From positions 62,001 to 126,000 of the forward strand of contig NIVC01000696.1 of assembly GCA_002269645.1 (NCBI GenBank): a DNA stretch of 64,000 nt, read 5' to 3'. Made by a program: the position numbers and the translations under genes. Source of the DNA: Macrostomum lignano. Taxonomy: Eukaryota. Numbering within the stretch: the stretch's first letter is position 1; each line of letters starts with the position of its first letter. This document shows positions 1,469 to 64,000 of the stretch, one piece after another. Below the pieces are notes generated by a model, which saw only the letters and a list, made by a program, of their open reading frames with translations, made no database searches and was not told where the DNA came from.

Positions 1469-2269
1469 GCACTCACAATTTTATCATGCTATTTCTTCAT
1501 GAAGCAAAGTTTTTCTATCTCCGTATTAAATTTTAAATGGGTTTTCCATTTCCAAGCAGTGCTGTGCTTGAAAGAAAATCTTTGCGAAAGCCGTTTAGAA
1601 AGGTAACCAAGAACTACAATTCATATTTTTCAGCTTTACGAAAACTTACTGTCATTAATATTGCTCTATCCCAGTTTGTATTTGTTGTCAAAGCGTCAAT
1701 TAAGGCATGATATATGAGCTGCAATATACTTCAAGCCAGCCACAGTTTAATCAGTTTTTGTATAGAAATCTGTCTGAATTATGATGTATGAATAATTGTG
1801 GATTATTCTATCTGATCTATCTGATGTATGTATCTGATACATATATACAGACATACTATTAGCATATATAAATACGAGCTGCCCTACTGGCTTGCTATTT
1901 TAAAAGAATAGTGCTTGAATTCATTCTTAGAGGATACAGCCGAACGTTAATCAATAACTGAATTTCTGGATTGCACTAAACTTCTGCGCTGGTTAGCTAT
2001 TCCTAGTCCAAAGTCTTAATTCATATTCATGCACGGGAATTGTTCGATACATGAAACAGTTTTTTCTAACTTGCCGGAATGAACATACGTCGGTGGAAAT
2101 CAACTTCAAAAAATATCAAGCAGTGAAGTGATGACGATGTACATGTACTGTAAGTCATACCGACAAAGTGAATTTCACTCTGTTCAAGATGCAAACAACC
2201 AAGCACCAATAAAACGGTCAATTCTGAGCCTAGTGGTTAGCTAGCGGACTCCGTACACCTATCGTCATC

Positions 2270-2980
2270 AAATAGACTACGAAAGATCCGCTTAGAGACG
2301 TCTAAGTCAGAAAGGAGCCACGTTCCCGGAGAGCTCAATCCATGGGCTCAGATCTGCTGTCCAAGGGATGCCTTCCTGAAAAGCTGGCTAACCGCGAGTT
2401 CGGGCTGACGGGACCAGTCTGTCTCCGGACAGTAAAGTTTGTATCACAGCCATTTTGATTCCAGATTTACGATCTCAGCCGTCAGAGTCGCACACAGAAA
2501 CGTCTACCACGATGAAGGTAGTCACGACCGCCTCATAGGACACACAAATCGTCTCTTTGTCGGAGGTGATCGACAACCAGAAATTTTCTTCGCTCTCTCG
2601 ACTTCTATGCATCACCACCTGGGTGCTGCGGTTCGTACCTACCATTCGGACGTCCATTCAGTCAAGCACGTCAGACCCGACCGTTAAGCTGACTGCCAGA
2701 GAATGTCAAGACGCGTGTGACCTTTGGGTAAAAGACAATCAGCGGAACACGCTCGTCTCCGTGTAAACATCAAGCTGAAGCCACATTCCTCAATCGTGAT
2801 CTCAATCTCTCTCTGGATGACGGCTTACTTCGTTGTCGTGGTCGACTGCCTGCGCAATTTCCATTTCCAGCAAGCAATCCGATCCTGATCCACGCTATTC
2901 GAACCTTCGCACATCATCCGGCATGCTCCTAACTCCGTTGCTCACTAAGAGTATCAGCTACACTTACGAAGGTTTGCTAC
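2270..2980 (+). mobile_element. BEL/Pao LTR-retrotransposon pol remnant (RNase H to pre-integrase region), frameshifted
   Basis: Frameshifted frames give NRLRKIR..HVPGELNP, DLLSKG..GP, KFSSLSRLLCITTWVLRFV..LTARECQDA and DDGLLRCRGRL. These are the recalled BEL/Pao motifs (HVPGxxNPAD; FSSxxKLxRxxAxVxRF; DGxLRxxGRL). No LTRs seen. Confidence 0.75.
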
Positions 2981-3644
2981 AAAAGCACCCAGTTACATGC
3001 ATTTACAAACATATTTAAGACCGTGCCTAAACCACCACGCAAAAAGCTTCACTTCCGAACTTTCGACTAGTTAAAATTTTCCCGTTCCAGACGGTCGGAC
3101 TGGACTACTGAAAGCAAAATGGCCCACATCAGATCCTGCTTGATGAAGTCACTCGGTGGTGATGTCAGCCCATCTGCGATCGGCACTACATCGGTGGTCA
3201 CGTCGTCGTCGAGCACAATTTCGGGAGACGTCGATGACATCAAATTTACTGTGTGTTTACTGGCTTACTGTACTCTTGAAATTATTACCTCAGTTACAGT
3301 GCCGATAAAAAGTCATTCCTGCGTTCCTCTCAATCGTCAATCGATAATGCTCTGTCTCGCATACTGATAAAATTTAACTTAAAGAACGTAATAAAATTCA
3401 TGTTTAGAATTTCAGAAATTCCTTGCTACAAATTTGCTTTGCTTGCAAAGTCAAATCTTTAAAAGATCCACAGTGTACCCAAAATTTACAGAGCCTAAGA
3501 ATATACACGAAAGCAATTTCTAGTCCTGCATAAGGAGACCATAATACCAAAAAGGTGTCTCCTAATCCTAATTCCTGTCAACTGGATTTATTCTCTTTAC
3601 GTTAATAAAATCAACTGCCAACCTGCTTGCAGCAATTTGCAGAG

Positions 3645-3860
3645 ATGCTTCGACTCTTCAACTTGACCTTGCTGTTAGCCACCTGCCTGCCGCTGCACCG
3701 GGTAGAGGCCAGCTGCAAAGACGAGACCATTTTGCGTAAATGTTCGATGCTGCTCAGTGAAGACGACTGCGGCGACTGCGTCATAACGGCACTTAGACGG
3801 TGCAATCGGAATGAGGCATCGGAAAAAATTGCTTCTCTCTGCAGTTTTGCACACTATTAG
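3645..3860 (+). CDS. Candidate small secreted cysteine-rich peptide (71 aa)
   Basis: ATG at 3645 sits 2 nt after TTTGCAG. N-terminus MLRLFNLTLLLATCLPLHRVEA looks like a signal peptide. The 49-aa mature part has 6 Cys. The ORF is GC-rich relative to its flanks, and AATAAA is at 3955-3960. Confidence 0.55.
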   Translation: MLRLFNLTLLLATCLPLHRVEASCKDETILRKCSMLLSEDDCGDCVITALRRCNRNEASEKIASLCSFAHY

Positions 3861-4687
3861 GACACGATTCGTTAACGTGGTTCAAAATTGATCAAAATCA
3901 AGGAAGATTCTATAGGACTGATCAGTTTCCTTTACGCTCGCTGCAGTGTTTACAAATAAAACTATTGAATTGAAGTGCAGCAATTTAATCAAAATTACTT
4001 GTCTGTCAGTATGGGGTTGATTTTTAAAAAACGGCTCAAGCGATTTTAACAAAACTTGCACTGTTCGATTAGAATTTTTTGGATTTGGTAAATATGTCGT
4101 GCCTAAGCAATTGCTCAATGCTAAGGGGATTAAATATTCGACAAACGAGTTTTCATATTGCTTTCAATAGGCGATCCCTGTAGGTAAAAAAAATTGACCG
4201 ACTGAAGTTCAAATCTAAATTCAATTCTATGGGGGCGTAGACTGCTAGTCTACTTCGTACGTATTAATAATCGATAATTGAAATTATCTCGGCAAATGGC
4301 TACTGAAGAGACACTTTTTGCACTCTTCGCTCTCGCACCAGCCATTTTGAAGGCCAGTAGCGGAAATTGCTAAAATATGTTTCTCGAAACTAAATAAATT
4401 TATAGCTGACTCTAACACTATTTCAAGTAGTATTTATTAGCTGCAAAAATAATATAAGCCGTTGGAATTACGAGTCCCTGCAAACAGTTGTATTAAACGA
4501 TTAAAGTTAGGACAATAGAAAATTCCAATACGGAAAATAAGTAACTTCAAACAAAGAAGCGAAAGGGATATTCCAAAGATCACAGGCATATGTAGTCTAT
4601 ATCGGGGAAGTGAAAACATGAACCTATTGGGATGATGAGATGGCGTAGAAATGATCAGGGGATACTGACAGACGAGGAATGATGGGT

Positions 4688-5405: not shown

Positions 5406-5498
5406 CGGTTGAATGTATCTTTCAAGCTTTATTAAAGCCTATTTTTCCCTATTTAGTGAAAATCGCAACTTTTGCTCGAGCATATCGGCAGCGCTTGA

Positions 5499-6215
5499 TG
5501 AGTTGAGCTGAGTTGAGCTGAGTTGAGTTGAGTTGAGCTGAGTTGAGTTGAGCTGAGCTGAGTTGAGCTGAGCTGAGCTGAGTTGAGTTGAGTTGAGCTG
5601 AGTTGAGTTGAGCTGAGCTGAGTTGAGCTGAGCTGAGTTGAGTTGAGCTGAGTTGAGCTGAGTTGAGTTGAGCTGAGCTGAGCTGAGTTGAGCTGAGCTG
5701 AGCTGAGTTGAGTTGAGCTGAGTTGAGCTGAGCTGAGCTGAGCTGAGCTGAGCTGAGCTGAGCTGAGTTGAGCTGAGCTGAGTTGAGCTGAGCTGAGCTG
5801 AGTTGAGTTGAGTTGAGCTGAGTTGAGCTGAGCTGAGCTGAGCTGAGCTGAGCTGAGTTGAGCTGAGCTGAGTTGAGCTGAGTTGAGCTGAGCTGAGCTG
5901 AGCTGAGTTGAGTTGAGCTGAGTTGAGCTGAGTTGAGTTGAGCTGAGTTGAGCTGAGCTGAGCTGAGCTGAGTTGAGTTGAGCTGAGTTGAGCTGAGTTG
6001 AGTTGAGCTGAGCTGAGCTGAGATGAGTTGAGCTGAGCTGAGTTGAGCTGAGCTGAGTTGAGCTGAGCTGAGTTGAGTTGAGCTGAGTTGAGCTGAGTTG
6101 AGTTGAGCTGAGCTGAGTTGAGTTGAGCTGAGCTGAGCTGAGATGAGTTGAGTTGAGCTGAGCTGAGTTGAGCTGAGTTGAGCTGAGCTGAGCTGAGCTG
6201 AGTTGAGTTGAGCTC
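5499..6215. repeat. Pentamer satellite (GAGTT/GAGCT, rare GAGAT)
   Basis: About 143 uninterrupted 5-bp units, directly visible. Confidence 0.97.
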
Positions 6216-6936
6216 AGGTACGATGCAAGATGTAGGCAAGATTGATGAACAGGCCGCCGGGAAGAGGCAAAACTGCATGTTTACACACTTTTTTCCCGCA
6301 GCTCGCAACTGGGAGTCTACGGTGGGAATGAAAATTTTTTTAATTGTCGAAAACAATATTGCCGTCGGCTGAGGGAAAACTGATCAATCATTAATAAATA
6401 ATGAGCCTCTGCTATACTAAAATAGCAGACAGAGTCTCCAGGCAATCACCAGTAGCTGCGCCAGTTTGCGGAAGCTGCTGCTGGTAGCGCGGGGTGAAAA
6501 TTTACTAATTTTATTGTGTATCGATCACTGTAGGCGGCTGCTGGGGGGCAAGAGGAAGGGGTTTGATGGAGGATAGCTAGGTAGCAGTCAGGTGGTTATT
6601 TATCAAAATATCTGTGGGTAGCTAGACTTGTCCAATATCAGACAAAGAACCAGTTGGAAGGGTGTAAGAGCTCATATCCCAGGTCTGGGCAATTTTTTTT
6701 CTTCAAGGGCAAATAAAAAATCTAGCTCATGACTGCAGGCTAGGTGAGAGCGAAGGAAAGGCAATCCAGGAGAGAAGAGATGAGAACAAACATGAGATGA
6801 AATATCAAAGGAGATAAGAGAAGAGAGTTTGTTGCATGAATGTGAGATGCGTGCTTGAAATGAGCTATTTTTTGAACGGACGTTCCGACTTTATTAGCAG
6901 GGCAATAATTGTTTGTTTAACGAGTAATTAATGAAA

Positions 6937-7878
6937 TATCGGATAGTGAATGATATACTAGTGAGTTATCGGATAGTGAATGATTATATACTAGTGAGTT
7001 ATCGGATAGTGAATGATATACTAGTGAGTTATCGGATAGTGAATGATATACTAGTGAGTTATCGGATAGTAAATTATGATATACTAGTGAGTTATCGGAT
7101 AGTGAATGATATACTAGTGAGTTATCGGATAGTAAATTATGATATACTAGTGAGTTATCGGATAGTGAATCATGATATACTAGTGAGTTGTCGGATAGTG
7201 AATGATATACTAGTGAGTAATCGGATAGTGAATGATGATATACTAGTGAGTTATCGGATAGTGAATGATTGTATACTAGTGAGTTATCGGATAGTGAATG
7301 ATTGTATACTAGTGAGTTATCGGATAGTGAATGATTGTATACTAGTGAGTTATTGGATAGTGAATGATTGTATACTAGTGAGTTATCGGATAGTGAATGA
7401 TATACTAGTGAGTTATCGGATAGTGAATGATTATATACTAGTGAGTTATCAGCTAGTGAATGATGATTTACTAGTGAGTTATCGGATAGTGAATGATAAT
7501 ATACCAGTGAGTTATCGGATAGTGAATGGCAAACTAGTGAGTTATCGGATAGTGAATGGCAAACTAATAATTTATCGGATAGTGAATTATGATAGACTAG
7601 TGAGTAGTCCGATAGTGAAATATGATATACTAGTGAGTAATCGGATAGTGAATGACATACTAGTGAGTTATCGGATAGTGAATGATTATATACTAGTGAG
7701 TTATCGGATAGTGAATGATTATATACTAGTGAGTTATCGGATAGTGAATGATTATATACTAGTGAGTTATCGGATAGTGAATGATTATATACTAGTGAGT
7801 TATCGGATAGTGAATGATTATATACTAGTGAGTTATCGGATAGTGAATGATTTGCTAGTTAGTTATCGGATAGTGAAT
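6937..7878 (+). repeat. 30/33-bp minisatellite (CTAGTGAGTTATCGGATAGTGAATGAT[TAT]ATA), about 30 units
   Basis: Directly visible. It keeps one reading frame open (ORF 6931-8064, IVND[Y]ILVSYR repeats). Confidence 0.95.
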
Positions 7879-8429
7879 CAGGACTCACTGAGAAGCAAGC
7901 AGGCAGTCAAACGGAATTTCAGGTGTGGAGATCTCGATCCATTTTCATTGCCCCATATACTTCATACACAGCTACATTTCGCTTGGCTTAAGATGTTCTC
8001 TGCTAGGTGGACTCAAAAGCAAAATTGGAATTTAATGCATCGAAAATTTGTTACCTACCTGTAGAAACTCCCCTGATTGGTAAAAGCATATTTTCCCAAA
8101 GGATTTGGTCTCTATTTTCATAAAAAAACAATACATAAAGCGGACGAACCAGCTGGACATTATGCTACAGTTAATCCTCAAGGAAATGCCACCCATTATC
8201 TGGACAGAGTCATCAGTTTTGGTGCCTGGAGGCGATTTATCATTTGGAGGTAGTTTGAATGATTTAAAAACTCAAATCAGATGCTCTTGCAAAGGAGATA
8301 GTCATGAACGATAGAATAGATCAAATTATGAAAAAATCATTCAACATTTATCTGATCTGGTTGAAGTGATTTATTAAAATTCAATGTTTCATGTGGCATT
8401 AGAAACGAAAATTGACCAGGAGATTGACC

Positions 8430-8530: not shown

Positions 8531-10501
8531 TGACCTTCTGAAACTGTTTCCATGTTCGGGTCCGAAGTGGTTTCAAATGTTTAGCCATCGATTTTTGAAG
8601 CTTGTCAGTTTGTTGTCACTGTTTTAATTATCAGTCCGAACAGCTCTCGTTGAAAGAGGAAATTGACCTAAGGAAGTCGAAATAATGACACATGACGTGC
8701 TCTGTTAGGGAACTTGGCTGTTACGGAAATACTACTGTGCAGATAGGCCTACTCAGGCCTTTCTAAGGGATACAAAGATGCGGATAGAGGCCAGTTTCCT
8801 GGACCCTGTCATGATCAATATCAAAGGCCGCAGACGAGGTAAATGCTTGTCACGTGTTGTTTTGAGAGTCACAGCTTTTGCAAGTGCATCTCTTGCTTTT
8901 TAAAACTGACGCTCTCTGGAACTTTTTGAGTCTCCCACGTCCGCTGTCCTTTAGTTCTCGTCTATTTTCACATAAATTCTATTTTCTTTCTTCCCCAAAT
9001 GAAATGTTGACCAGAAAAAAACTGAAGTTGTATTTTAGCTCGTACATCATGGTGCCACTGCTTCGATAGAACTATAATTTATAAATTGAAACTCTTTGGA
9101 TTTTCATTGATTAGTCTTTTAGGCTGGTGGGTATTGAGAGCTGGATAAATTTTTTTGTGCTTTCCAACCATATCCAGGCTGAAATGCTTCACCTTTGCAA
9201 ACTGTATTGCAATACCCCTTTCACTGAACAGTGTCCAGCCCCAGCACGGCACAGATGGAGAGCATCAGGGACGTTTCAAATTTATCAGCATCCGGGTCTG
9301 TCTAAATGAGGTACTCATTGCTGACTGAACATAGCAGTTTCTCAACTCGCCAATGATAGGCAGCTCTGCTGGTCAAATCAGCCAATTGGCTGAGCTCTGC
9401 ATAAAATCTATAGCAAGTCAACAGTACCGCACTGACTTGTGCTTATTTGCTGCAGAAGTTGCCCAGTCTGAGTCTCCTCTTTTTGAAAAAAACGCTGTTT
9501 GCGATGGACTCGACTGACTTAATCGGTAAGTTTGAGCAAGTGCTTCAATCTTCTGCTTCCTTTATTCTGTTAGGCTTGTAAGTTTGAAGCACAAGTGATT
9601 TCCCTTCTTCAAAGAGAAAGATGCTCATGGTTTAAGTCATACTTTAGATAGATAAGTGATAAGTCAGTCCAAGTCCTCGAATCTTCGTCATCGACGAAAT
9701 GGAGCGAGAATGTTATGCAGCGATTGCAGCGATAATCTGTTACATATCTAGTTTAGTGCAATATGAATGAGCGCTTACTCAACCGTTTCTATTAGAAAGC
9801 TATTCTCATTCTCAAGGCTGTATTCGAGTAGTCACCACTGCTAAGCTATGCACAAGAAAATGTGTGTCCACATGGCTTCTTGGTGAATGTCCGCATATTC
9901 CAGGATAGCAGATTTGACTAACGCGATAGCAAACGAACGAGAAATTCCAAAACCCCATGCAAAGTAATTCCCGGCTTCGTCGGCTTCTCAGAATGCATGA
10001 GTTGCTATGCATTAATTACTACCGATTTGTATCTCAGGTCATCTGACAGCAGCTCATGTTTGCGGCACGAGTTAATTTCGTATAACGAGATGCAGGCTCT
10101 TTAAAGCATCATCAGATAAGGGGTTTCTCAGGAGAAAAATGTCATGTCATGGTCACTATATAACACAATAATACGTCGAACACGTAAAGAATCTTCAGTG
10201 ATCTAAGGAAGTATATTTAAACAGTCATACGAGCAAATCAGGACACAAAAATGCTCTTTTCGTTTGAGGATCGCATACACACATAGTACTATTGCAGATG
10301 AAATCCAAGCGGTTTCCAAGCCAGATCAGAAGACAGAGCGGTCATAAATTTATTCATAATAAGCTTGGCGAGAAATAAATCCTTAAAGTTCCAATGGGTC
10401 ACAGAGAATGCTGTCTTTAACATGTCTCGGCATGTATGCAATGCAGTCAAGTCATTCAATGTCAAACATTGATTTGGAATCGCTGTTTTTTTAACTTTCA
10501 G

Positions 10502-12075
10502 CCGACAACAAAACGAATGGAACCGATGACTCCGACAGAGCCAGTTTCTATCTTCTGAGTGCTTTCCGTCTGCTTCTTTACTCCAACAACATTATGGCAG
10601 GCATCGGTGTTGTCATCAATTTCGTTAATTACCGCGTCTTCTGCCACAGCCCCGTCAGGAAGCACTACCTATCCAGGGTTCTCCGCCTGCTATCACTCAA
10701 CGACATGATGCTGCAGCTAATTTACCTGGTCACTGCCACCACAACCTTGCACGACAGTAACTTGTTCAGTTGCTATGTGATTACTTACTCATACAGCCTG
10801 CTAACCTTCCTCAGCGCCTGGCTGCTGGTTGGCATCAGTCTGGATCGCTTCATGTGCATTATACTGCCGGCGACCTACACGCCCAGAATCGGGTCCGAGA
10901 AGGCGTACCGACTTGTTATCATTTTTCTGGCGCTCGGCCTCGCATGGAGCATTCACGTATTTTTGCTAGTCGACTACCGCGTCGTGACCGAGATGGAGCC
11001 CGACCGCAAGTACTGCCGAATACAGACGTCCAAGATGACCTGGCACGCTCTGGACTCCGTAGTGAGCGCGATCGCACCCGGAGTGCTGCTGACGGTGATG
11101 AATTGCTACATCTGCTTCGCAGTTCGCTCGTTCTTCCGTCGTGTCCGGCTGAACAATCTGCGCGAGTCCGTCTTGTGCGACCGCGATCAGCTGGCCACCC
11201 TGCGACAGGGGCCCGCGCAGAGATGCGCTCACCAAGCCTGCTTTGTGTTTCAGCAGCAACAGGAACTACTGCTGAAGCAGCAACAGCAGCAGGAGCAGCG
11301 ACATCAACAGCAGAAACAACATTCTCCATCGGGAGAACAGCACTGTACCATTCAGACAGAAGTAAGAACCTTTCTGTCCCATGTCTATACATAACTATTC
11401 CTAATCCTACCTCACATCTTGTTATAATTAGGACTCAAGGCTCCAAAGCCTGTTCGATTATTGCTGTGTGCTCAGAATTATGGAAATTAATTGAGAGTGA
11501 AAGAAGTTGGTCGTTGGTCACTTCCAGTTTTCGCCAACTGAACCTCAAACCATCGATGACTAAAATTCGACGATTTTCGACGCTAGTAACTACTTGAAAA
11601 TGTCTGAGAAACTTTATACTAACCAATATCATTGATACCACAGGACTCTGGTGACGGGGCCAGCTCCTCAGATCAAAGCCGGCATCAGTCAAGTCAGCAA
11701 CAGTCACAGCAACAGCAGCAGCAACCGCAGATCGAGAAAGCAGAGGAATTGGCTAATGACACAGACGTGAACAACAATGCCAAGGAACTTCTCCGTCAGC
11801 AGTACCAAATCACCAGGATGTTGCTGATCTTCTGCCTGGCATACTTTCTGCTAAACCTGCCGCACTACCTGGCCCTGTTAGTAGCTCTGATCCGCTACCC
11901 ATTGGCTCCATACCGGATACTGCAGTTCAATGTCATGCGGTCCGTGGCGCAGCTGCTGTACTTTTTGCACTTCTCCACCAATTCGCTGATTTACGCCTAC
12001 GCCAATAAGCAGTTTCGCATTGCCTTCATCAGACTGGCTCGCAGGTGTCTCCGCTTTTGTTGTCGCAGGGGATGA
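10502..12075 (+). CDS. Rhodopsin-class (neuropeptide-receptor-like) GPCR 1
   Basis: Exons 10502-11361 and 11644-12075, phase-0 intron GTAAGA..CACAG with TACTAAC at 11617-11623. Seven hydrophobic segments, SLDRF in TM3, FxxxYFLLNLP in TM6, [13 protein letters not shown] in TM7, N-glycosylation sites NKT/NGT, poly-Gln in the third intracellular loop. The exon at 10502 needs an upstream phase-1 exon (candidate 8778-8838); otherwise the ATG at 10594 is used. Confidence 0.88.
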
Positions 12076-14409: not shown

Positions 14410-14940
14410 TTGAAACTTTTTTGTAATAATAACCTTGCTTGATGTTCCAGCCTGGGTTGCCGGACTCTTTGCTGGACCCGTTCCTCGAGGCTATCCTGCA
14501 GACCCTGACGGCCTGCCCTGACGGCCATAGGGCGGCGTTGTTCCAGGCGGTGATCGAGACCTTCCTGTTGTACAACGCCGAGACCTGGACGCTGACGAAT
14601 TCGCTCGAACAGCAGGTCGATGCGGCGCATGCTGGCCTGCTGCGCGCCGCTTACAAGAACGGCTACGAGCGAGTCACCAATGCGGCACTCTATCGCCGCA
14701 CGGCCTGTCCCGTCCCAGCGAACTGTTGCGCCGTCGGCGACTCCAGCTGGCAGACAATATTATCCGAGCCAAGTCGTACTGCTTGCACCTGCTCGCAGCC
14801 GGTGCAGGAGATTCTGTTGCTCTTGCTGCAGGTACCCTGCAGATCAACGTTTCGTCGACTACTTGCTGGCTGATGCCTGCGCCCTGTAACGTTGTCTCAT
14901 GCCTGACTGGCTGACAACGTATTTTGTTGTTGTTGCTGTT
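14410..14940 (+). mobile_element. RTE-like non-LTR retrotransposon 3' fragment
   Basis: LFQAVIETFLLYNAETWTLT..LLRAA..VTNAALY and, after a frameshift, RRRLQLA..IR match the RTE-type RT C-terminal region. It ends in a (TTG)n tail near 14925-14940. Confidence 0.78.
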
Positions 14941-16172: not shown

Positions 16173-17052
16173 CTCAACGCTGCAGATTAATCCAGCGGTG
16201 AGCTGTATTTCATATAAGCAAAGCCAGATAAAGCAAAAAATTGCCAGAGCAGATTGAGAGAAACACTCGGACTGATTAGAATCGCGGCTCAGCCCCTGAC
16301 CAAGCCTTGGTATCAAGTGGTTCAAGATACGAATGCGGGCCTCAGCCGCTCCAGATCAATTCCTAATCACGATGAAGCCGTCTTTATTACCAATGCCAAT
16401 TCCATCTTCTTTGAGTAGCGCACAGTGTCCAGAGCAACATCGTATTAGTCAACATAGACCGGAGCGACTGCTCAGGCAAAGGCCAACCGTCTTATCGGCT
16501 GCTCCAGGGCTCCGACTTCGTGACCGGATCGCTTCTCAGAAAGCTGCTGCCTACATGTAAGATCTGAGCATTAGAAAGAGCAGGATGGATTCAAGCGCTC
16601 ACAACGTAGCCTTTTCTCAGAAGCTGAGTCTATCAAAGTATAGAAATTAAATCCAACTAATTTTCAAGGACAAGTTAACTATCAGTTACTATATTATACT
16701 TCTAACAGTACATTGAAGAATGATCACTGGTTGTAAAAAGACGAGACGAGAGTCTTAGTATTTTTTGAAGAATTCAACGCATTGAATAGAGTTCTACCAC
16801 GGACAACTTTAAAGTCCCCTTATAAAAATACATACTGGAGCGATTCAAAGTTACCAACTCAAAGTTAATAACTTTTTTTTGAATTATTAGAATAGTTCCT
16901 GTAAGCAAGCATGCTATTGAAATACATTTATTTTCATGTATGCGAGCTGTGAGTAAGAAGATTATAGCGCATGCAACTACACTATGCTATACTCTGTTCT
17001 GTCCCAGACCTGCTGTGCCTGCTTGTACGTACGGCGTACTCGCACACGTACA

Positions 17053-17289
17053 CCCAGTGTCCCAGTGTCCCAGTGTCCCAGTGTCCCAGTGTCCCAGTGT
17101 CCCAGTGTCCCAGTGTCCCAGTGTCCCAGTGTCCCAGTGTCCCAGTGTCCCAGTGTCCCAGTGTCCCAGTGTCCCAGTGTCCCAGTGTCCCAGTGTCCCA
17201 GTGTCCCAGTGTCCCAGTGTCCCAGTGTCCCAGTGTCCCAGTGTCCCAGTGTCCCAGTGTCCCAGTGTCCCAGTGTCCCAGTGTCCCAG
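17053..17289. repeat. 9-bp tandem array (CCAGTGTCC)n, about 26 copies
   Basis: Perfect repeat, directly visible. Confidence 0.98.
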
Positions 17290-17330
17290 GTCATTCTGTT
17301 CTCGGCTACGCTTGCCAAACCACCCAGAGC

Positions 17331-17833
17331 CTACATCACTATCAGTATAGCTACATCACTATCAGTATAGCTACATCACTATCATTATAGCTACATCACT
17401 ATCAGTATAGCTACATCACTATCAGTATAGCTACATCACTATCAGTATAGCTACATCACTATCAGTATAGCTACATCACTATCAGTATAGCTACATCACT
17501 ATCAGTATAGCTACATCACTATCAGTATAGCTACATCACTATCAGTATAGCTACATCACTATCAGTATAGCTACATCACTATCAGTATAGCTACATCACT
17601 ATCAGTATAGCTACATCACTATCAGTATAGCTACATCACTATCAGTATAGCTACATCACTATCAGTATAGCTACATCACTATCAGTATAGCTACATCACT
17701 ATCAGTATAGCTACATCACTATCAGTATAGCTACATCACTATCAGTATAGCTACATCACTATCAGTATAGCTACATCACTATCAGTATAGCTACATCACT
17801 ATCAGTATAGCTACATCACTATCAGTATAGCTA
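17331..17833. repeat. 20-bp tandem array (CTACATCACTATCAGTATAG)n, about 25 copies
   Basis: Near-perfect repeat with one G>T variant at 17381-17390. Confidence 0.98.
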
Positions 17834-18372: not shown

Positions 18373-19992
18373 CTAGTTGTTCTGCTCTATCTCTATCTGA
18401 TCGGTCTGGGACACGTTCCGGCTGACGGTCAGTCTGATAGTCTCCGGAGGCGATCGCGACGCCCCTGCCATTTCCCGACGGGCCGCCCGCGTCTGAACTC
18501 GACTGGTTGCCACCGCAGCAGCTCCGGTCGTTGTTGAGGCTCCGTTGGGACGCCCGCCGCCACGTAGGCAACAGCTGAGAAACCGGCGGAACTCGGTGCG
18601 GAAATTTCGACAGGCTAAGTTGTAGATGACAGGATTCAGGCAGTAGTTTAGGTAGAAAAGCAGTCTCAGCAGATCCACAGTTAGGTTGGACAGGTAGTCC
18701 GCAACCATCTTGTAGCACTTAGTGCTTGCTAAGCACAAAGCGAGGCTGCGAAACGGCATTGTGGTGAAGAAGTACACCGCGGCCACAATCACACTAAAGT
18801 ACACTACCCTGCGCCGGTGCTTTAAAGCAACGCTATTTGTAGCGCAGCAGGTCTGATTGGTGCGACGCGGTGTTTGCTGCTGCGATTGCTGCTGGGAAGC
18901 TGCGCAGCTTTGGCCACTGAGCCTAGCGGGTAGAGACAGCCTAAAATTTTAAATTAAAGAGCTCGTGTGCTTTGCTCCTTCAACTGGTACGGTACTTTTG
19001 CATCTTAACGCCCTCGCGTCGTCCATAAGCGCTTTAGAAGTTCTTTGTGCCTAAATTCTTAGTTGTTAGCTGCAAAAGCACTTTAATAAATGTCTTAAAT
19101 TTCACTTTCTATATTCTATCCTTGGGAGCAATTCACTTCTTCCCTTTAAATTACCCTAATCCCCTGAACGTCACCTAGCTCCTGAAGGGTGTCGTTGCCG
19201 CTGCTGCTGCTGCCGCGGCTGCTCGCCATGCTTGCCTCGCAGATGTTGAAACGAGCGCACCAGTCGGCAGAAAACCAATGCATAGAGAACGGCGGTCAGG
19301 CCAAGAGGAAGGAACAACTCTGTCACCGTGTTCAGCACGTAGAATGTTCCCTGCTTCATCGCAGATGCTATGAGACTGTGATTTGCCGGCGGCAGATTGC
19401 AAATGTACAATGTGGTGCCATTTTCTGTGTCTGATACTCTGACAAGGAAGGCGGTGAAGAAGAAGGGCAGGGGCACAGCCAGCGACAGAAGCCAGAGCAG
19501 CACCAGAGCGCCCGATCGAAGGCTCCTTTTGGCCAGCAGTATTGGCGCTTTCAGCGGGTACCAGACAACAACGAATCGTTCAATGGCCACGAGAACAATG
19601 CACAAGCTCGACGCCATGGTGAACACGTGTTCCAGCCAGAAGCTTAGCTTGCCTATAATAAAATATGCAGTTGTGACGAAGTGATACACAATCAATGGTT
19701 TCGGTGCAGTAGCATCTGTGCGAAGTTGTCTAAACTTACAGACAATTTCCGGCTTGTACACCCTGCGAAAATCCACCAGGATGCCGTGCGGCACGCACAC
19801 AGCCAAGGACAAAGTGTCCGCAACAGCCAAGTTGACCATTAGTGCGTTCACTCTGGTGTGCAACTGGCGACTGCTGATGATCACGGCTATGACCAACAGA
19901 TTGCCGGCTAGGCCGAAGGTCATGATAGTCAGTTTCGTAGCAAACAGAAACACCGTATACGGGTCAAACTCTGTAGCTGTGTCGTTGAACAT
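18373..19992 (-). CDS. Rhodopsin-class neuropeptide GPCR 2 (ETH-receptor/TRH-receptor-like)
   Basis: Exons 19992-19740, 19652-19175 and 18940-18373, with matching phases (GTAAGT..TATAG; GTGACG..TTTTAG). Motifs GNLLVI (TM1), LAVAD (TM2), VCKL, AIERF..PLKA (TM3), LFYLNYCLNPVIYN..FR (TM7). Subfamily call is from recalled similarity only. Confidence 0.88.
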
Positions 19993-23185: not shown

Positions 23186-24247
23186 ATGTGTGCCAGCAAC
23201 ATGGCGACTTTGATGGGCCCAGCGTCTCTGACGATACTCCAAGCCCTATTATGGCTCGTCTTCACGGCTTCACTAACCATCAATGGCAGCATTGCGCTGC
23301 TGTTGCACAAGCGTAGAAGGCACTTCCGCGGTTCCAACAGCCTCCGATTGCAGAGTTTAGCCACGGCGAACCTTCTATTAGGGGGCGCAGCCATGAGCAC
23401 AGACGCTCTGGTGCTGGCCAACCCAGATTTTACGCAATTCAACGGCTTCTGTGAAACTTCCCAGTTTCTGGAGTCACTGGCGCTTGTAGCAAAGGCCTGG
23501 ACTTTGGCGGCCATCGGACTGTCCAGAGCTGCTGGAGCGGCCGCTCCCGGAGGTGGTGGTTTCCGCATCTCGCGAGCGGCCGCACTTGAAACGGTTTTGT
23601 TGTGGCTGGCGGCTGCTGCCTATTCAAGCCGCTGGTTGGTTCTGGGTGGCCCCGTCGCATCCCTAGAATTCAATGATGCTCGGAACACTACTGAGAGCAT
23701 AATTATGTGCGATATCATCACTACTCCAGTCGGCCGAGTCGCTTCAGCCATATCCGACGTTCTTGTGGAGTTTGGCGGCCCGCTGGCAGTAGCTGGTGCT
23801 GCCTACGCATCGATTGTTTGGCGGCTAAGACAGTCAACTCGACGTCTGCGGCAGTCAGGAGTGTCGAGTGGGGCAGCCGCGGGCGATCAGGCCGGCGCCG
23901 ATTCGGGGGACTCGGCAACTAGCAAAGTGGCGCGAACAGCGGCTCTGCTTCTGCTGCAGTTTGCGGCTGCTGCTCTGCCGTATCAGACTTTGAAACTTCT
24001 GGGCCAGGCTATTGCCGGCGTTGGCGATCCGCTGCTTCTGGAGGCCATGCGAATGCTCATGGTGCTTGACACCTGCGCCTGCGTTCCTGTCTACGCGCTC
24101 AGTGTCAGCTTTGTTCGCGATCAGCTGATGGCTGCTCTGCCGAAACAATGCCAAACGTGTTGCTGCTGTCACGGGCGGGGCTCCTTGCGAGTTGGCGATG
24201 CAACAAAGACAGGCGGCAGTGGGGGCCGACGCGGTGCAACAAGTTAA
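23186..24247 (+). CDS. Divergent intronless 7TM receptor, GPCR 3 (353 aa)
   Basis: Seven hydrophobic segments with class-A spacing, TM1 Asn (INGS), TM2 LAxAN, Cys before TM3 (FCETS), Cys in loop 2 (IMCD), Pro in TM5 (EFGGP) and TM6 (ALPY). The DRY and NPxxY positions read LSRA and CVPVY. Confidence 0.8.
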   Translation: MCASNMATLMGPASLTILQALLWLVFTASLTINGSIALLLHKRRRHFRGSNSLRLQSLATANLLLGGAAMSTDALVLANPDFTQFNGFCETSQFLESLALVAKAWTLAAIGLSRAAGAAAPGGGGFRISRAAALETVLLWLAAAAYSSRWLVLGGPVASLEFNDARNTTESIIMCDIITTPVGRVASAISDVLVEFGGPLAVAGAAYASIVWRLRQSTRRLRQSGVSSGAAAGDQAGADSGDSATSKVARTAALLLLQFAAAALPYQTLKLLGQAIAGVGDPLLLEAMRMLMVLDTCACVPVYALSVSFVRDQLMAALPKQCQTCCCCHGRGSLRVGDATKTGGSGGRRGATS

Positions 24248-26920: not shown

Positions 26921-27953
26921 ATGCACAGGTGAGTCAAAAATTTAAAATTTATTTATTGAAACTGATTTAGAACTAGACTTCTTGTTTCGCTCTTAGTTCC
27001 ATCTAAATTCACGATGCAACCTCATCACCTGTACAATCATCGACAGTGCAAAGCACGAGGTTCAGCAGCAGCAGCACATCGGCTCAGGCCATGCAGCCAG
27101 CGACTCCCCTCGAGGACCTTCGGTACATCCGGCACAGCTGCTGTTGGCACCCTGGCTAATGCAGCTGCCGCCGCATATCCTGCTTGCTTTTGCATCAGCC
27201 AGCGCCGAATGTCAAAATCTGCTGCGAAGTTATCAGCACCAGCGGCAGCTAGTGCAGCAACAGACCTGCTGGCAGCAGGCTCAGCAGCGGCCACGGCAGC
27301 AGAAATTTGATTACAGTCGCCTGGCCGAGTCTTGCTTGTGTGCCGATGAAAAGCCGCAGATGCAGCAGAAAGTGCAGCAGAATAGCAAAGGGTGAGCATT
27401 GCTGAGACGCTTTCATTAGCACTCATGAAAATTGCAGGCTTGTCACAATTGCCGGCTTTAACAGTCGGACATTTCACGGGCTTTTAAAATATGAGCCCCT
27501 AATTAAAAGTATGCATGCTACACCGCCTTAAGGAAGCAGAGTTACCACTGTTTCCCGATGTCGTAATAACTGCTTTCTGCAAAGACGCCGATTTTATAAA
27601 TTGACTCTTAAACAGAAGAAGTGTACAGTGAAGTAAAATAATCATTGTTATTCTATAATGCTAGAAATTGCAGAGCCCGCAAGGAGTACGTGTGCAAGTA
27701 CTGCAGGCGCCACTTCACCAAGTCCTACAACCTGCTGATTCACGAGCGAACCCACACAGATGAGAGGCCGTTTCCCTGCGAGATCTGCGGCAAAGCCTTC
27801 AGGCGGCAGGACCACCTGCGGGACCACCGGTACATTCACTGCAAGGACAAGCCGTTCAAGTGCGACGTCTGCGGCAAGGGCTTCTGCCAGGCCAGGACTC
27901 TGCAGGTGCACAGGACGCTGCACCGCAGAGCCTCAGCTTCAGCTGTGGTGTGA
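26921..27953 (+). CDS. Osr: odd-skipped/Osr family C2H2 zinc-finger transcription factor (3 fingers)
   Basis: Exons 26921-26928, 27047-27391 and 27665 (or 27674)-27953, all phase 2 and consistent. [57 protein letters not shown] is the odd/Osr signature, with the [10 protein letters not shown] motif upstream. AATAAA at 28044. Confidence 0.93.
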
Positions 27954-28793
27954 AGCCATCGAGCACGCTTCTCGCGTTGATAGACAGTTCCGCATATTTC
28001 AACTGTGTTCGAAATTCTGCATGACAGAAGCAACTATAAAGTAAATAAAGTGTCTTTTACTTTTTGGTATATTTTAAAACATCACTGATGGTTGATAGCT
28101 GGCTTTCAGAACGGATGCTTAATTTATTGCTTTAAATATCAATTTCCTGAAATAATCAATAATAGTGACTGAACAAGGTCAAAACCTGTACATGTAGTTT
28201 TTGTAATATTTTTTCTATTTCTTTCTCTTGCTGCCTCCCAAACGGGGGAACACAGATTGCTAGTCTATTCCCAATTGCGTTAGGTACAAGCAAGCACCTA
28301 GCTAAGTACAAATGAATTGAATTCAACTGTTTCATGAAAATTTTCTGCTCTACGAACTAAAACGCAGCCACTTTTGTATTTACACCTAACAATAAGCGGG
28401 TGATAAGTGCCCTTTTAAACAAAAGAGAATTTTCCAACGCGTTTCAAACCTCTAATGCATGAGCTGTAGCTATGCTAGAACAGAAATACGAGGTATCGTT
28501 TACTATTCATGCCTTTGCAGGATGGTGAACTGCATAACCTATCTTCCCAGAAAAATGAAAATGCTCCGTTCATTTTTTTAGCATAATTTTAGTACGACGC
28601 GGTGAAGGAGTGCCTCACGTAGTTATCAGCTGCAGAATACAAAAAATCCCTTGCTTGGGGAGAGAGGCAAAACACTCAAAGAATTTGTTCAAAATTAGAC
28701 AAATTTTGACAATGACGACACAACTCATGAAAAGCTCCACTTACTGTAATGCTTCGAACTAATAGTATGATGCATACTTTATACAACTTGAAT

Positions 28794-30771: not shown

Positions 30772-31658
30772 ATCAAATGGTGGCAGTCAAATGCTTGTAG
30801 GTCAAATGGTGGCAGTCAAATGCTTGTAGGTCAAATGGCTGGCAGTCAAATGCTTGGAGGTCAAATGGTGGCAGTCAAATGCTTGGAGGTCAAATGGTGG
30901 CAGTCAAATTCTTGGAGGTCAAATCGTGGCAGTCAAATTCTTGGAGGTCAAATGGTGGCAGTCAAATGGTGGCAGTCAAATGCTCGGAGGTCAAATCGTG
31001 GCAGTCAAATTCTTGGAGGTCAAATGGTGGCAGTCAAATGCTTGTAGGTCAAATGGCTGGCAGTCAAATGCTTGGAGGTCAAATGGTGGCAGTCAAATGC
31101 TTGGAGGTCAAATGGTGGCAGTCAAATTCTTGGAGGTCAAATCGTGGCAGTCAAATTCTTGGAGGTCAAATGGTGGCAGTCAAATGCTCGGAGGTCAAAT
31201 CGTGGCAGTAAAATTCTTGGAGGTCAAATGGTGGCAGTCAAATTCTCGGAGGTCAAATGGTGGTAGTCAAATGTTCGGAGGTCAAATTGTGGCAGTCAAA
31301 TGCTTGGAGGTCAAATGGTGGCAGTCAAATTCTCGGAGGTCAAATTGTGGCAGTCAAATGCTTGGAGGTCAAATGGTGGCAGTCAAATGCTCGGAGGTCA
31401 AATCGTGGCAGTAAAATTCTTGGAGGTCAAATGGTGGCAGTCAAATTCTCGGAGGTCAAATGGTGGTAGTCAAATGTTCGGAGGTCAAATTGTGGCAGTC
31501 AAATGCTTGGAGGTCAAATGGTGGCAGTCAAATTCTCGGAGGTCAAATCGTGGCAGTCAAATGCTTGGAGGTCAAATCGTGGCAGTCAAATTCTCGGAGG
31601 TCAAATGGTGGCAGTCAAATACTCGGAGGTCAAATGGTGGCAGTCAAATCCTTGGAGG
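30772..31658. repeat. 29-bp minisatellite (GTCAAATGGTGGCA + GTCAAATGCTTGGAG), about 30 units
   Basis: Directly visible dimeric 14+15 bp unit. The overlapping ORFs are repeat translations. Confidence 0.96.
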
Positions 31659-54362: not shown

Positions 54363-55094
54363 ATGTCAGTTGGGCCGTCACAATTAGAGTCGGCTAAACA
54401 CACATCCGACAGAGAATTTCAACAGCAATTAACTGAGGAACCTATTCGCAAGGCATTTATTCGCAAGGTTTACAGCATATTGTGCTGCCAGCTGCTGATA
54501 TCGGGCGGTTGCATTGCATTCTTCATATTCTTCGAGCCGGCCAAGAAGTTTGCTATAAAGTTTCAGTGGCTCTATATTGTGGTATTTTCTGTACTATTCG
54601 TATTCCTCATTGTTTTGTCATGCTTCGACAGTGTCAGGCGGAAGTTTCCGCTCAACTTTATTCTGCTTGGCCTGTTCACCTTGCTTCAAGGCTTTGCATT
54701 GGGCCTGGTGTCCGCTCGCTTCAAAACCGATGCTGTACTAATCGCTGTTGGGGTGACAGCTTTTGTAGTGCTTGCACTGACCATCTTTGCTTTGCAAACT
54801 AAGCTGGACTTCACTTACCTGAGCGGTATCCTGTTTGTACTAGTAATTGTACTTGTAGCATTCGGCATCCTGTGCGCTATTCTTCAATCTCGGTACCTCA
54901 CCCTGGTCTACTCGTGTCTGGGCGCTCTAATATTCAGCGTCTACTTAGTCGTTGACACTCAGCTGATGCTTGGCGGAAAGCATAAATACTCGGTGTCGCC
55001 TGAGGAATATATCTTTGCCGCTCTGAACATCTACATGGATATTGTCAATCTGTTCCTCTTTATTCTAATGCTTACTTCATCGTTTCGGGACTAA
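54363..55094 (+). CDS. Lfg: Lifeguard/TMBIM (Bax inhibitor-1 superfamily) membrane protein, copy 1, intronless
   Basis: IRKAFIRKVYSIL, RRKFPLNFILLGLFT, LTIFALQTKLDFT, YLVVDTQLMLGGKHKY..SPEEYIFAALNIYMD, with both conserved Asp residues present. Confidence 0.95.
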   Translation: MSVGPSQLESAKHTSDREFQQQLTEEPIRKAFIRKVYSILCCQLLISGGCIAFFIFFEPAKKFAIKFQWLYIVVFSVLFVFLIVLSCFDSVRRKFPLNFILLGLFTLLQGFALGLVSARFKTDAVLIAVGVTAFVVLALTIFALQTKLDFTYLSGILFVLVIVLVAFGILCAILQSRYLTLVYSCLGALIFSVYLVVDTQLMLGGKHKYSVSPEEYIFAALNIYMDIVNLFLFILMLTSSFRD

Positions 55095-55818: not shown

Positions 55819-56556
55819 ATGGCGGCAGCCAGCGAGCCGCAGTCGGGTGACGCGGAATCCGGCGGCCTTGTAGACAATGGCAATATGCAATTTAACGAAG
55901 AGTCTATTAGGAAAGGATTCGTGCGCAAAGTGTTCGGCATACTCACTGTACAGCTCGTGGTCACCATGGGATTTATAGCGCTGTTTGTGTTCTGCCAGCC
56001 GATTAAACAGTATGCTATACGCAATGACTGGCTGTACATCTTAGCCTTGGTGCTAACTATAATACTAGTCATTGTCCTGGCCTGTTGCGAGGATGTCAGG
56101 CGGAAGTTTCCTGTCAACTTAATCTTGTTGGGCTTGTTCACTCTGTGCGAGAGCTACATGCTAGGCAGCATCTCTGCTCGCTTCGATACTGACGCCGTGT
56201 TTATGGCTATCGGTGTCACAGTGTTCATAGTGTTCGCTCTGACTCTGTTCGCTATGCAGACTAAGATTGATTTCACCTATCTGAGCGGAATTCTGTTTGT
56301 CCTGCTCATCGCCCTGATTCTGCTTGGTCTGCTGTGCGCTATTGTGCAGAACAGGTTTGCCACCCTAGCCTATGCCTGTTTGGGAGCATTGCTGTTCAGC
56401 GTGTACCTGGTTGTGGACACCCAGATGATGCTGGGCGGCAAGCACAAGTACTCTCTGTCGCCCGAAGAGTACGTGTTTGCTGCGCTCAATCTCTACTTGG
56501 ACATTGTCAACATCTTCCTATTTATCCTTATGATTATCCAAGGAGCGAGAGGTTGA
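55819..56556 (+). CDS. Lfg: Lifeguard/TMBIM membrane protein, copy 2, intronless
   Basis: IRKGFVRKVFGIL, RRKFPVNLILLGLFT, FAMQTKIDFT, VDTQMMLGGKHKY..SPEEYVFAALNLYLD. AATAAA at 56671. Confidence 0.95.
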   Translation: MAAASEPQSGDAESGGLVDNGNMQFNEESIRKGFVRKVFGILTVQLVVTMGFIALFVFCQPIKQYAIRNDWLYILALVLTIILVIVLACCEDVRRKFPVNLILLGLFTLCESYMLGSISARFDTDAVFMAIGVTVFIVFALTLFAMQTKIDFTYLSGILFVLLIALILLGLLCAIVQNRFATLAYACLGALLFSVYLVVDTQMMLGGKHKYSLSPEEYVFAALNLYLDIVNIFLFILMIIQGARG

Positions 56557-62889: not shown

Positions 62890-63084
62890 TGCTGAATGCT
62901 GATTGAAATCGCTCTCATAAACAGTTACAGTTTTACGCTATTCCCCTGTCTTGATCCGGTACAATACGGTTATTTTACAATATTGTGTATTAGAAGTTTA
63001 ATATAAAACGCCTGGATAGTAGTGTATTTGGAACATTGTCACATTTGTAAAGACGCTAGACCTTTTATTTGGTTCTAAAGCTGA

Positions 63085-63550
63085 CTGTCCAGGGTGCTGC
63101 TGTAGGCTGTTCAGTGTGCTGTCCAGTGGACTGTCCAGTGTGCTTTCCAGTGTGCTGCTGTGTGCTGTCCAGTGTGCTTTCCATTGTGCTGCTGTGTGCT
63201 GTCCAGTGTGCTTTCCAGTGTGCTGCTGTGTGCTGTCCAGTGTGCAGTCGGGTGGGCTGTCCGGTGGGCTGTCCAGTGGACTGTCCAGTCGCTTTCCAGT
63301 GGGCTGTGCTGTGTGCAGTCGAGTGGGCTGTCCGGTGGGCTGTCCAGTGGGCTGTCCGGTGGGCTGTCCAGTGGGCTGTGCTGTGTGCTGCTGTGTGCTG
63401 TCCAGTGTGCTGCTGTGTGCTGTCCAGTGTGCTGCTGTGTGCTGTCCAGTGGGCTGTCCGGTGTGCTGTCCAGTGTGCTGCTGTGCTGTCCATGGGCTGT
63501 CCGGATGGCTGTGCCTGTGCAGTCGGCTGTTCAGTGGGCTGTGCAGTGGG
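63085..63550. repeat. Degenerate roughly 12-bp repeat (TGTGCTGTCCAG / TGGGCTGTCCGG family)
   Basis: Directly visible downstream of the GLUT 3' end. The ORFs across it are repeat translations. Confidence 0.9.
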
Positions 63551-64000
63551 CCAGGACTGATTTTAGTTAGTTAACTAATAATAAGTGCTATTTCAGAGTG
63601 TGAATGTTGAATGTGTGAATGTGTGTTGAATGTGTGAGTGTGAATGCTTAGATCGCAATACAGTAGTACCCCTACGGCATACTTCGCGCGTTCCATATTT
63701 GACCGCCACACTTTTCAGAAAGACAAGTTTTTCCACTTTTTATTCCTGTATCTGGCTTGTCCAATACTTAATCTGTCATTTCGCTTTGATTGTAAGCTGT
63801 AAGATTGATTGCCATACTCCACAGTCTAAATATACTACTTTAAGCGGAGAATTTTGTCATTATTTAAATTTATTTTTTCTCAAAACTTATCCAGCCTCCG
63901 TTGATCTCTAATTAGTAATTTGCTTATTTTGCTAGATCATGAATTCCAAGTTTCTTCGTTGCACCTCTTAGTTGTACTTGCAGTAGGCTGTATTGAGTAT

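Follow-up and report, generated by a model that had tools for sequence, protein, structure and literature searches.

A possible orphan gene for a secreted, six-cysteine micropeptide in the flatworm Macrostomum lignano

Aplysia attractin and the Euplotes Er pheromones are small, helical, three-disulfide peptide pheromones that are released into water. Other cysteine patterns are carried by larger or differently spaced families: DUF26 is a plant alpha+beta domain of ~100 aa, and Kunitz/BPTI proteins have the spacing C-x8-C-x15-C-x7-C-x12-C-x3-C. Short open reading frames (ORFs) tend to escape annotation pipelines. In the annotation of Macrostomum lignano, coding potential was scored with TransDecoder (PMC5730564). 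The closest described peptides from this animal are encoded by the prostate-limited transcripts Mlig-pro1-76, for which SignalP predicts a classical signal peptide in 38 of 65 cases; very short (<40 aa) or unidentifiable ORFs were dropped from the analyses of these transcripts (PMC5977470). Reproduction-related genes of the genus Macrostomum diverge until homology detection fails (PMC7336406). Secreted peptides of the sort discussed below are already known, and M. lignano has many fast-evolving secreted gland products (PMC5977470, PMC7336406). In addition, 30–39% of M. lignano genes are trans-spliced to a spliced leader (SL) of 35 nt, whose 3' end is ATG, at a [T/C]TNCAG acceptor (PMC8629364, PMC5730564), and this trans-splicing is concentrated in conserved genes (PMC8629364). 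For the genome of this species, tracks of SL reads, T-fill poly(A) reads and RNA-seq coverage are public (PMC5730564).

The locus considered here lies in a 64-kb stretch of the M. lignano genome, the whole of which was analysed and is referred to as the window. Direct translation of positions 3645–3860 on the + strand gives an ORF of 71 aa followed by TAG, with the full translation MLRLFNLTLLLATCLPLHRVEASCKDETILRKCSMLLSEDDCGDCVITALRRCNRNEASEKIASLCSFAHY. A sequence-only reading had proposed this ORF as the gene of a secreted six-cysteine micropeptide, and its coordinates, leader, Cys spacing, TTTGCAG and AATAAA all proved exact when re-read from the DNA. The features of the locus are as follows.

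3601..3876, no strand assigned: GC-rich island coinciding with the ORF, 51% GC against 34% in the AT-rich flanks
3604..3609, + strand: upstream AATAAA, 17 nt before the first acceptor motif
3627..3632, + strand: TTGCAG, matching the SL acceptor motif [T/C]TNCAG (motif from PMC8629364); the exon start would be 3633
3637..3642, + strand: second TTGCAG, within the TTTGCAG at 3636–3642; the exon start would be 3643
3645..3710, + strand: predicted signal peptide MLRLFNLTLLLATCLPLHRVEA, from a heuristic predictor, with cleavage after residue 22
3711..3857, + strand: predicted mature peptide, 49 aa, 5.5 kDa, pI 5.6, six Cys and three predicted helices, from translation and modelling
3858..3860, + strand: TAG stop codon, from the sequence
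3955..3960, + strand: candidate AATAAA poly(A) signal, starting 95 nt beyond the end of the stop codon

The 22-aa leader ends in V-E-A and has the layout of a Sec/SPI signal peptide, for which we required a positive n-region, an uninterrupted hydrophobic h-region of 7–15 residues and small neutral residues at -3 and -1. As scored by the heuristic predictor, the n-region carries R3, the 14-residue h-region (L4–L17) is free of charged residues, Pro stands at -7, and Val and Ala occupy -3 and -1, respectively. Six Cys are located in the 49-aa mature part, at positions 2, 11, 20, 23, 31 and 44, giving the spacing C-x8-C-x8-C-x2-C-x7-C-x12-C; the seventh Cys of the precursor lies inside the leader.

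The candidate resembles several described systems in part. With the seminal-fluid and gland transcripts Mlig-pro1-76 it shares the organism and the frequent combination of a short ORF and a signal peptide, but nothing ties the candidate to the prostate or to another gland, and its sequence is absent from the three supplementary text files of PMC5977470. Like SL trans-spliced M. lignano genes, it has [T/C]TNCAG immediately upstream of its start codon; those genes are mostly conserved (PMC8629364), whereas the candidate is an orphan for which trans-splicing is read from the hexamer alone. The resemblance to attractin and the Er pheromones consists in size (~40–60 aa), secretion, six Cys, a predicted all-helical disulfide-stabilised bundle and the lack of a strong positive charge. 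The Cys spacing differs, however, and no PDB match was found; the analogy is one of design and not evidence for a pheromone. The C-X8-C-X2-C motif (CSMLLSEDDCGDC) recalls DUF26/Gnk2 (Stress-antifung, PF01657), but the match of the ORF to this family reaches 11.8 bits against a 25-bit cut-off (E = 0.39), which makes it a non-member, and the candidate is a 49-aa, all-helical prediction from a flatworm. Membership of the Kunitz/BPTI family is likewise not indicated: the spacing differs, there is no match to the family in Pfam even at E<=10, and the predicted fold is all-helical. When the spacings of DUF26, Kunitz, insulin-like, CHH/ITP, ShK and defensin peptides were compared with that of the candidate, none matched.

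Among random open 71-codon frames with the base composition of the candidate ORF, at least seven Cys occurred with a probability of 0.0097 and a signal-like N-terminus, scored by the same heuristic, with a probability of 0.031; the joint probability was 2.2e-4 per random ORF. The window contains ~137 ATG-initiated ORFs of 50–150 aa, so one would expect ~0.03 ORFs of this type in each window. When the window was simulated 200 times with a second-order Markov model, signal-like ORFs with at least six Cys appeared at 0.125 per window, with at least one in 12% of the simulations. The chance rate of a signal-like leader together with six Cys is 3–12% of such windows, and in the real window the candidate is the sole ORF that combines the two. 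We regard the pattern as suggestive: it exceeds chance in part and is not compelling when many windows are scanned.

These numbers bear on the possibility that the candidate arose by chance as an ORF in non-coding, GC-rich DNA, its hydrophobic start, seven TGY codons and flanking TTGCAG and AATAAA being coincidental. We consider this explanation doubtful, yet it deserves serious weight. Chance matches of this kind are to be expected because many windows were scanned, and the 12% obtained in the simulations points in the same direction. On the other hand, the leader, six Cys, acceptor and AATAAA would occur jointly in only ~6e-4 of windows (0.125 x 0.038 x 0.137), although these features were picked post hoc.

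The composition of the locus is harder to reconcile with coincidence. The GC step of the island over both of its 300-nt flanks is equalled or exceeded at 0.9% of window positions. The other such islands in the window are mostly Pfam-recognisable or plainly coding exons, among them the C2H2 zinc-finger exon at 27661–27996, ATP synthase c, exon 1 of malate dehydrogenase (MDH) and the sugar transporter; the remaining ones are a few satellites and unassigned pieces. A chance ORF leaves this sharp, 230-nt island unexplained, given that most islands of this kind are exons. Within the candidate, GC content is highest at the third codon position (GC3 0.62), followed by GC1 (0.49) and GC2 (0.44), the same order as in 12 trusted coding segments, and the position-specific pattern fits the + frame of the candidate best, which also argues against chance.

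Codon usage does not discriminate. With the Pfam-confirmed genes of the window as the coding reference set, the candidate has a log-odds score of -0.005 bits/codon, compared with 0.19 ± 0.16 for coding chunks and -0.15 ± 0.18 for non-genic ORFs. Its synonymous-only score of 0.029 (coding, 0.137 ± 0.135; non-genic, -0.112 ± 0.154) ranks at the 22nd percentile among coding chunks and at the 84th among non-genic ORFs, and is slightly surpassed by that of one antisense frame. Two results favour a chance ORF. First, the Cys-rich mature part is not coding-like, scoring -0.19 overall and -0.09 on synonymous codons only. Second, half of the six reading frames are free of stops across most of the island, namely +0 (83 codons) and two antisense frames (68 and 80–82 codons), as happens in GC-rich non-coding DNA because stop codons are few there.

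It is also conceivable, though we think it unlikely, that the island is a real exon of another transcript (UTR or otherwise non-coding, 3' terminal and read in another phase, or from the minus strand) and that the + strand ORF is incidental. The GC-island signature predicts an exon and says nothing about its frame, and codon scores do not separate +0, +2 and two antisense frames. The minus strand has an acceptor-like CTGCAG at 3839–3844, a stop at 3675–3677 in one frame and at 3611–3613 in another, and then AATAAA, and a coding-like minus-strand ORF lies at 3067–3243 (score 0.074; GC123 0.57/0.36/0.62). However, the antisense frames of the island have no Pfam or PDB relatives, and their interpretation as a real exon was dropped when no family was found. 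Moreover, the AT-rich DNA on both sides shows no convincing partner exons, the other + frames end after 8 and 34 codons, and only the + frame combines a signal-like leader with a start codon placed just after the acceptors.

The minus-strand ORF at 3067–3243 encodes 58 aa (MMSSTSPEIVLDDD...) and has a codon score of +0.07; no Pfam match was obtained for it. Facing away from the candidate across ~400 nt of AT-rich sequence, it may represent a divergent first exon, with a promoter region common to both.

Two YTNCAG acceptor motifs stand 2 and 12 nt 5' of the candidate ATG, and on the hexamer match alone the candidate carries the acceptor motif of the SL trans-spliced class. The TTTGCAG at 3636–3642 had been noticed before as acceptor-like; the motif is indeed present, but an SL trans-splice acceptor fits it better than a cis-splice site. 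An exon start at 3633 would place the SL-terminal ATG in frame, giving MQFAE plus the ORF, and an exon start at 3643 would cause the SL ATG to open an out-of-frame, 8-codon uORF overlapping the ATG of the ORF itself. Across the window, 3.8% of ATGs have an acceptor motif in the 22 nt that precede them, as do 2 of 9 real start codons. One of these two belongs to the Bax1-I gene at 55819, where the AATTTGCAG context of the second acceptor recurs 12 nt ahead of the ATG. Among the real genes of the window, 3 of 7 have AATAAA 20–200 nt after the stop, against a background of 13.7% of stop triplets. The candidate alone, among 135 ORFs, has both the acceptor motif and AATAAA.

These accessory signals nevertheless carry limited weight against a chance ORF. 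In addition to the backgrounds of 3.8% and 13.7%, the minus strand of the island also offers a YTNCAG, in the palindromic CTGCAG, and an AATAAA, seen as TTTATT at 3587, the latter downstream of both antisense stops; because the antisense strand carries such equivalents, signals of this kind are cheap. Furthermore, trans-splicing is concentrated in conserved genes and the candidate is unconserved, which counts against an SL-spliced gene model.

The AATAAA at 3604–3609 may have arisen by chance in AT-rich DNA, or it may serve as the poly(A) signal for a cistron further upstream, as at the junctions of operons. The order poly(A) signal, short spacer, acceptor and ATG is the intercistronic layout of SL operons, in which the mode of the intercistronic spacing in M. 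lignano is ~100 bp (PMC8629364). A search for an upstream + strand gene that would form such a junction at 3604–3609 identified no convincing one.

Homology searches identified no relatives of the candidate. A word-indexed search of 5.8 billion clusters gave zero candidate homologues of the ORF, and an exhaustive phmmer search of 1.84 billion representatives of ~15 billion proteins gave no genuine homologue. The lone phmmer match (P0002, E = 6.5e-4) is an artefact: this protein of 1,555 aa contains four near-identical internal repeats, each of which matches a short 'DDCG..C' stretch, and one chance similarity was therefore counted four times. The protein collections searched include the UniRef proteins of M. 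lignano, with the genomic homeologues of this hidden-polyploid species and its congeners lying outside them; because no match was found, there is no annotated copy or homeologue among these UniRef proteins. No true homologue of the ORF was found in a scan of metagenome contigs. Two loci there with 35% identity (L001/L002) were rejected, since they come from a bacterial contig of 65% GC that carries ribonucleotide reductase genes and the similarity consists of the seeded word CLPLHRVEAS alone, in an antisense non-coding frame with zero Cys conserved.

The search for paralogues that had been suggested for this ORF was run by tBLASTn within the 64-kb window and found none; the ORF DNA is single-copy there. 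Overall, neither the protein collections nor the metagenome contigs nor the window contain a homologue or paralogue that keeps both the frame and the Cys, and none that breaks the frame appeared either, as no homologue at all was found in the searched collections. Pfam gave sub-threshold noise only for the ORF, the best phmmer match in the PDB was an unrelated protein (E = 1.3), and Rfam and tRNA scans of the window yielded no matches. The earlier impression that the Cys spacing belongs to no known family was thus borne out by the Pfam, PDB sequence and Foldseek searches. The absence of homologues and paralogues in the searched collections and the window is also what would be expected of a chance ORF.

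The same searches bear on a third alternative, namely that the locus is a fragment of a transposable element or dispersed repeat that is richer in GC than its surroundings. The M. lignano genome is repeat-rich (PMC8629364), and frame-shifted pieces at ~2400–3130(+) (LSLDDGLLRCRGRLP..., ASLPNFRLVKIFPFQTVGLDY) resemble the part of BEL/Pao LTR-retrotransposon polyproteins that precedes the integrase, in an orientation in which the would-be element points toward the ORF. A BEL/Pao retrotransposon running into the ORF was rejected because the resemblance in motifs was not supported by Pfam or homology searches. A match to a transposon protein had been named in advance as grounds for abandoning the gene, and none was found by Pfam, by exhaustive phmmer or in the + frames of 2201–4400, where no Pfam transposon domain is present. 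At E<=0.001, no homologue was retrieved for the stitched upstream fragment, the peptide is matchless among the 1.84 billion representatives, annotated transposon proteins included, and the 64 kb hold no second copy of the ORF DNA. Finally, ~400 nt of DNA with 28–39% GC separate the fragment from the ORF. We consider an origin from a repeat very unlikely.

Structure prediction with AlphaFold2 was carried out without an alignment. The full precursor was modelled with a pLDDT of 62, and Foldseek searches with this low-confidence model returned meaningless matches only. The mature part alone gave a compact model (pLDDT 77.7, pTM 0.56) with predicted helices at residues 5–13, 17–30 and 33–43. The Cys residues of the modelled mature peptide are located at the helix ends and are brought together by the up-down-up arrangement of the bundle, which makes three disulfides geometrically plausible; we suggest, without having computed it, that the pairing may be C1–C5, C2–C3 and C4–C6. 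The proposal of a helical three-disulfide peptide thus stands for the predicted helices, and for the disulfides as a matter of geometric plausibility. In a Foldseek search with the mature model, the best match had E = 3.7 and the matches were generic designed helical bundles. Among disulfide-rich helical folds in the PDB (attractin, Er pheromones, CHH/ITP and saposin-like proteins) there was no significant match in sequence or structure. A compact model with a pLDDT of 78 weighs against a chance ORF.

The neighbouring gene downstream is that of a G protein-coupled receptor (GPCR). A rhodopsin-type GPCR ORF at 10594–11394 is 100% identical to the M. lignano UniRef protein P0001. The gene, at 9504–12075(+), has a first coding exon at 9504–9525 (MDSTDLI, then a GTAAG donor) that splices to ~10499, and this model reproduces P0001 exactly. 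The idea that the candidate ORF supplies a first exon or signal peptide to this GPCR is ruled out by the position of its coding start at 9504–9525; the candidate lies 5.6 kb upstream of the GPCR start codon, outside the GPCR coding sequence. P0001 (193 aa) looks truncated relative to the ORFs in the window, and a further intron is likely near 11394–11632, in a Q-rich third loop.

Three divergent rhodopsin-family GPCR genes are found within 15 kb, at 9504–12075(+), 18373–19992(-) and 23186–24247(+), and the candidate is located at the edge of this cluster (9.5–12.1, 18.4–20.0 and 23.2–24.2 kb). They have weak Pfam matches to the nematode chemoreceptor families Srsx, Srx, Srw and Srz, and the one GPCR of the cluster that was searched had a single match at E<=1e-5 among 5.8 billion clusters. 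The cluster may consist of lineage-specific chemoreceptor-like receptors.

Beyond the GPCR at 9504–12075, Pfam confirmed the other two GPCRs of the window, along with genes for malate dehydrogenase, a gamma-butyrobetaine-hydroxylase-like protein and a sugar transporter and two Bax1-I genes in tandem. The Bax1-I (GRINA/TMBIM-like) paralogues, at 54363–55094(+) and 55819–56556(+), are apparently intronless and ~725 nt apart; the YTNCAG 12 nt before the ATG of the second suggests SL trans-splicing, perhaps of an operon-like pair. Visual inspection of the GC-island scan indicated that the exon at 27661–27996(+) codes for C2H2 zinc fingers in tandem. A 144-aa ORF at 14439–14873(+) (…LYNAETWTLTNSLEQQVDAAHAGLLRAAY…), which resembles the C-terminal part of a LINE reverse transcriptase, had no Pfam match at E<=0.001. 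Minisatellite arrays at 5439–6356, 6931–8064, 16940–17390, 30854–31414 and 63065–63574 read as long artefactual ORFs (SAQLN..., VSYRIVNDIL..., PSVPVSQC..., WQSNGGSQMLGGQIVAVKFLEVK... and AHWTAHRT..., respectively). Together with these arrays, the strong local GC skew of 0.22–0.40 at 4–8 kb is typical of this repeat-rich genome.

Whether the candidate is a real gene is, in our judgement, roughly an even bet. The reading that we tentatively favour, at slightly less than even chances, is a lineage-restricted, orphan, single-exon M. lignano gene for a secreted, disulfide-stabilised three-helix peptide. In such a gene, the pre-mRNA would be SL trans-spliced at either YTNCAG, with the exon starting at 3633 or 3643. 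From the former, the in-frame SL ATG would add MQFAE; otherwise, translation would initiate at the ATG at 3645. The hydrophobic leader would then target the chain to the ER, where it would be cleaved after V-E-A, and the 49-aa product would fold as an up-down-up bundle of the three predicted helices, plausibly with three disulfides. The 3' end of the mRNA would lie ~15–25 nt past the AATAAA at 3955, giving a message of ~0.35 kb, and the product would be a slightly acidic, 5.5-kDa extracellular peptide.

The functions listed in the sequence-only reading (seminal fluid, antimicrobial, toxin) were guesswork with an insect flavour, and the source is no insect but a free-living flatworm. With a pI of 5.6, the predicted mature peptide is mildly acidic, which disfavours a cationic antimicrobial peptide of the classical type. 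A gland secretion or a signalling or pheromone-type molecule is more likely than a cationic, membrane-active antimicrobial peptide, but any function is a guess. A far bolder version, to which we would give very little credence, is that the peptide is a newly arisen three-helix, three-disulfide extracellular signal, such as a water-borne or mating cue, for which a nearby GPCR could be the receptor and whose start codon may be donated by the SL.

Gland secretions of M. lignano, both in seminal fluid and in adhesion, are under active study by RNAi and in situ hybridisation. Animal genomes commonly encode orphan peptides that are secreted, so that a single unverified example leaves the wider picture unchanged. 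If real, the candidate would be a further secreted micropeptide, cysteine-stabilised and taxonomically restricted, from a model flatworm, and would provide a neat case of an SL-terminal ATG that is able to act as an in-frame start codon. The more useful lesson is that the combination of a sharp GC island, YTNCAG and AATAAA offers a cheap way to shortlist missed small genes in the M. lignano genome.
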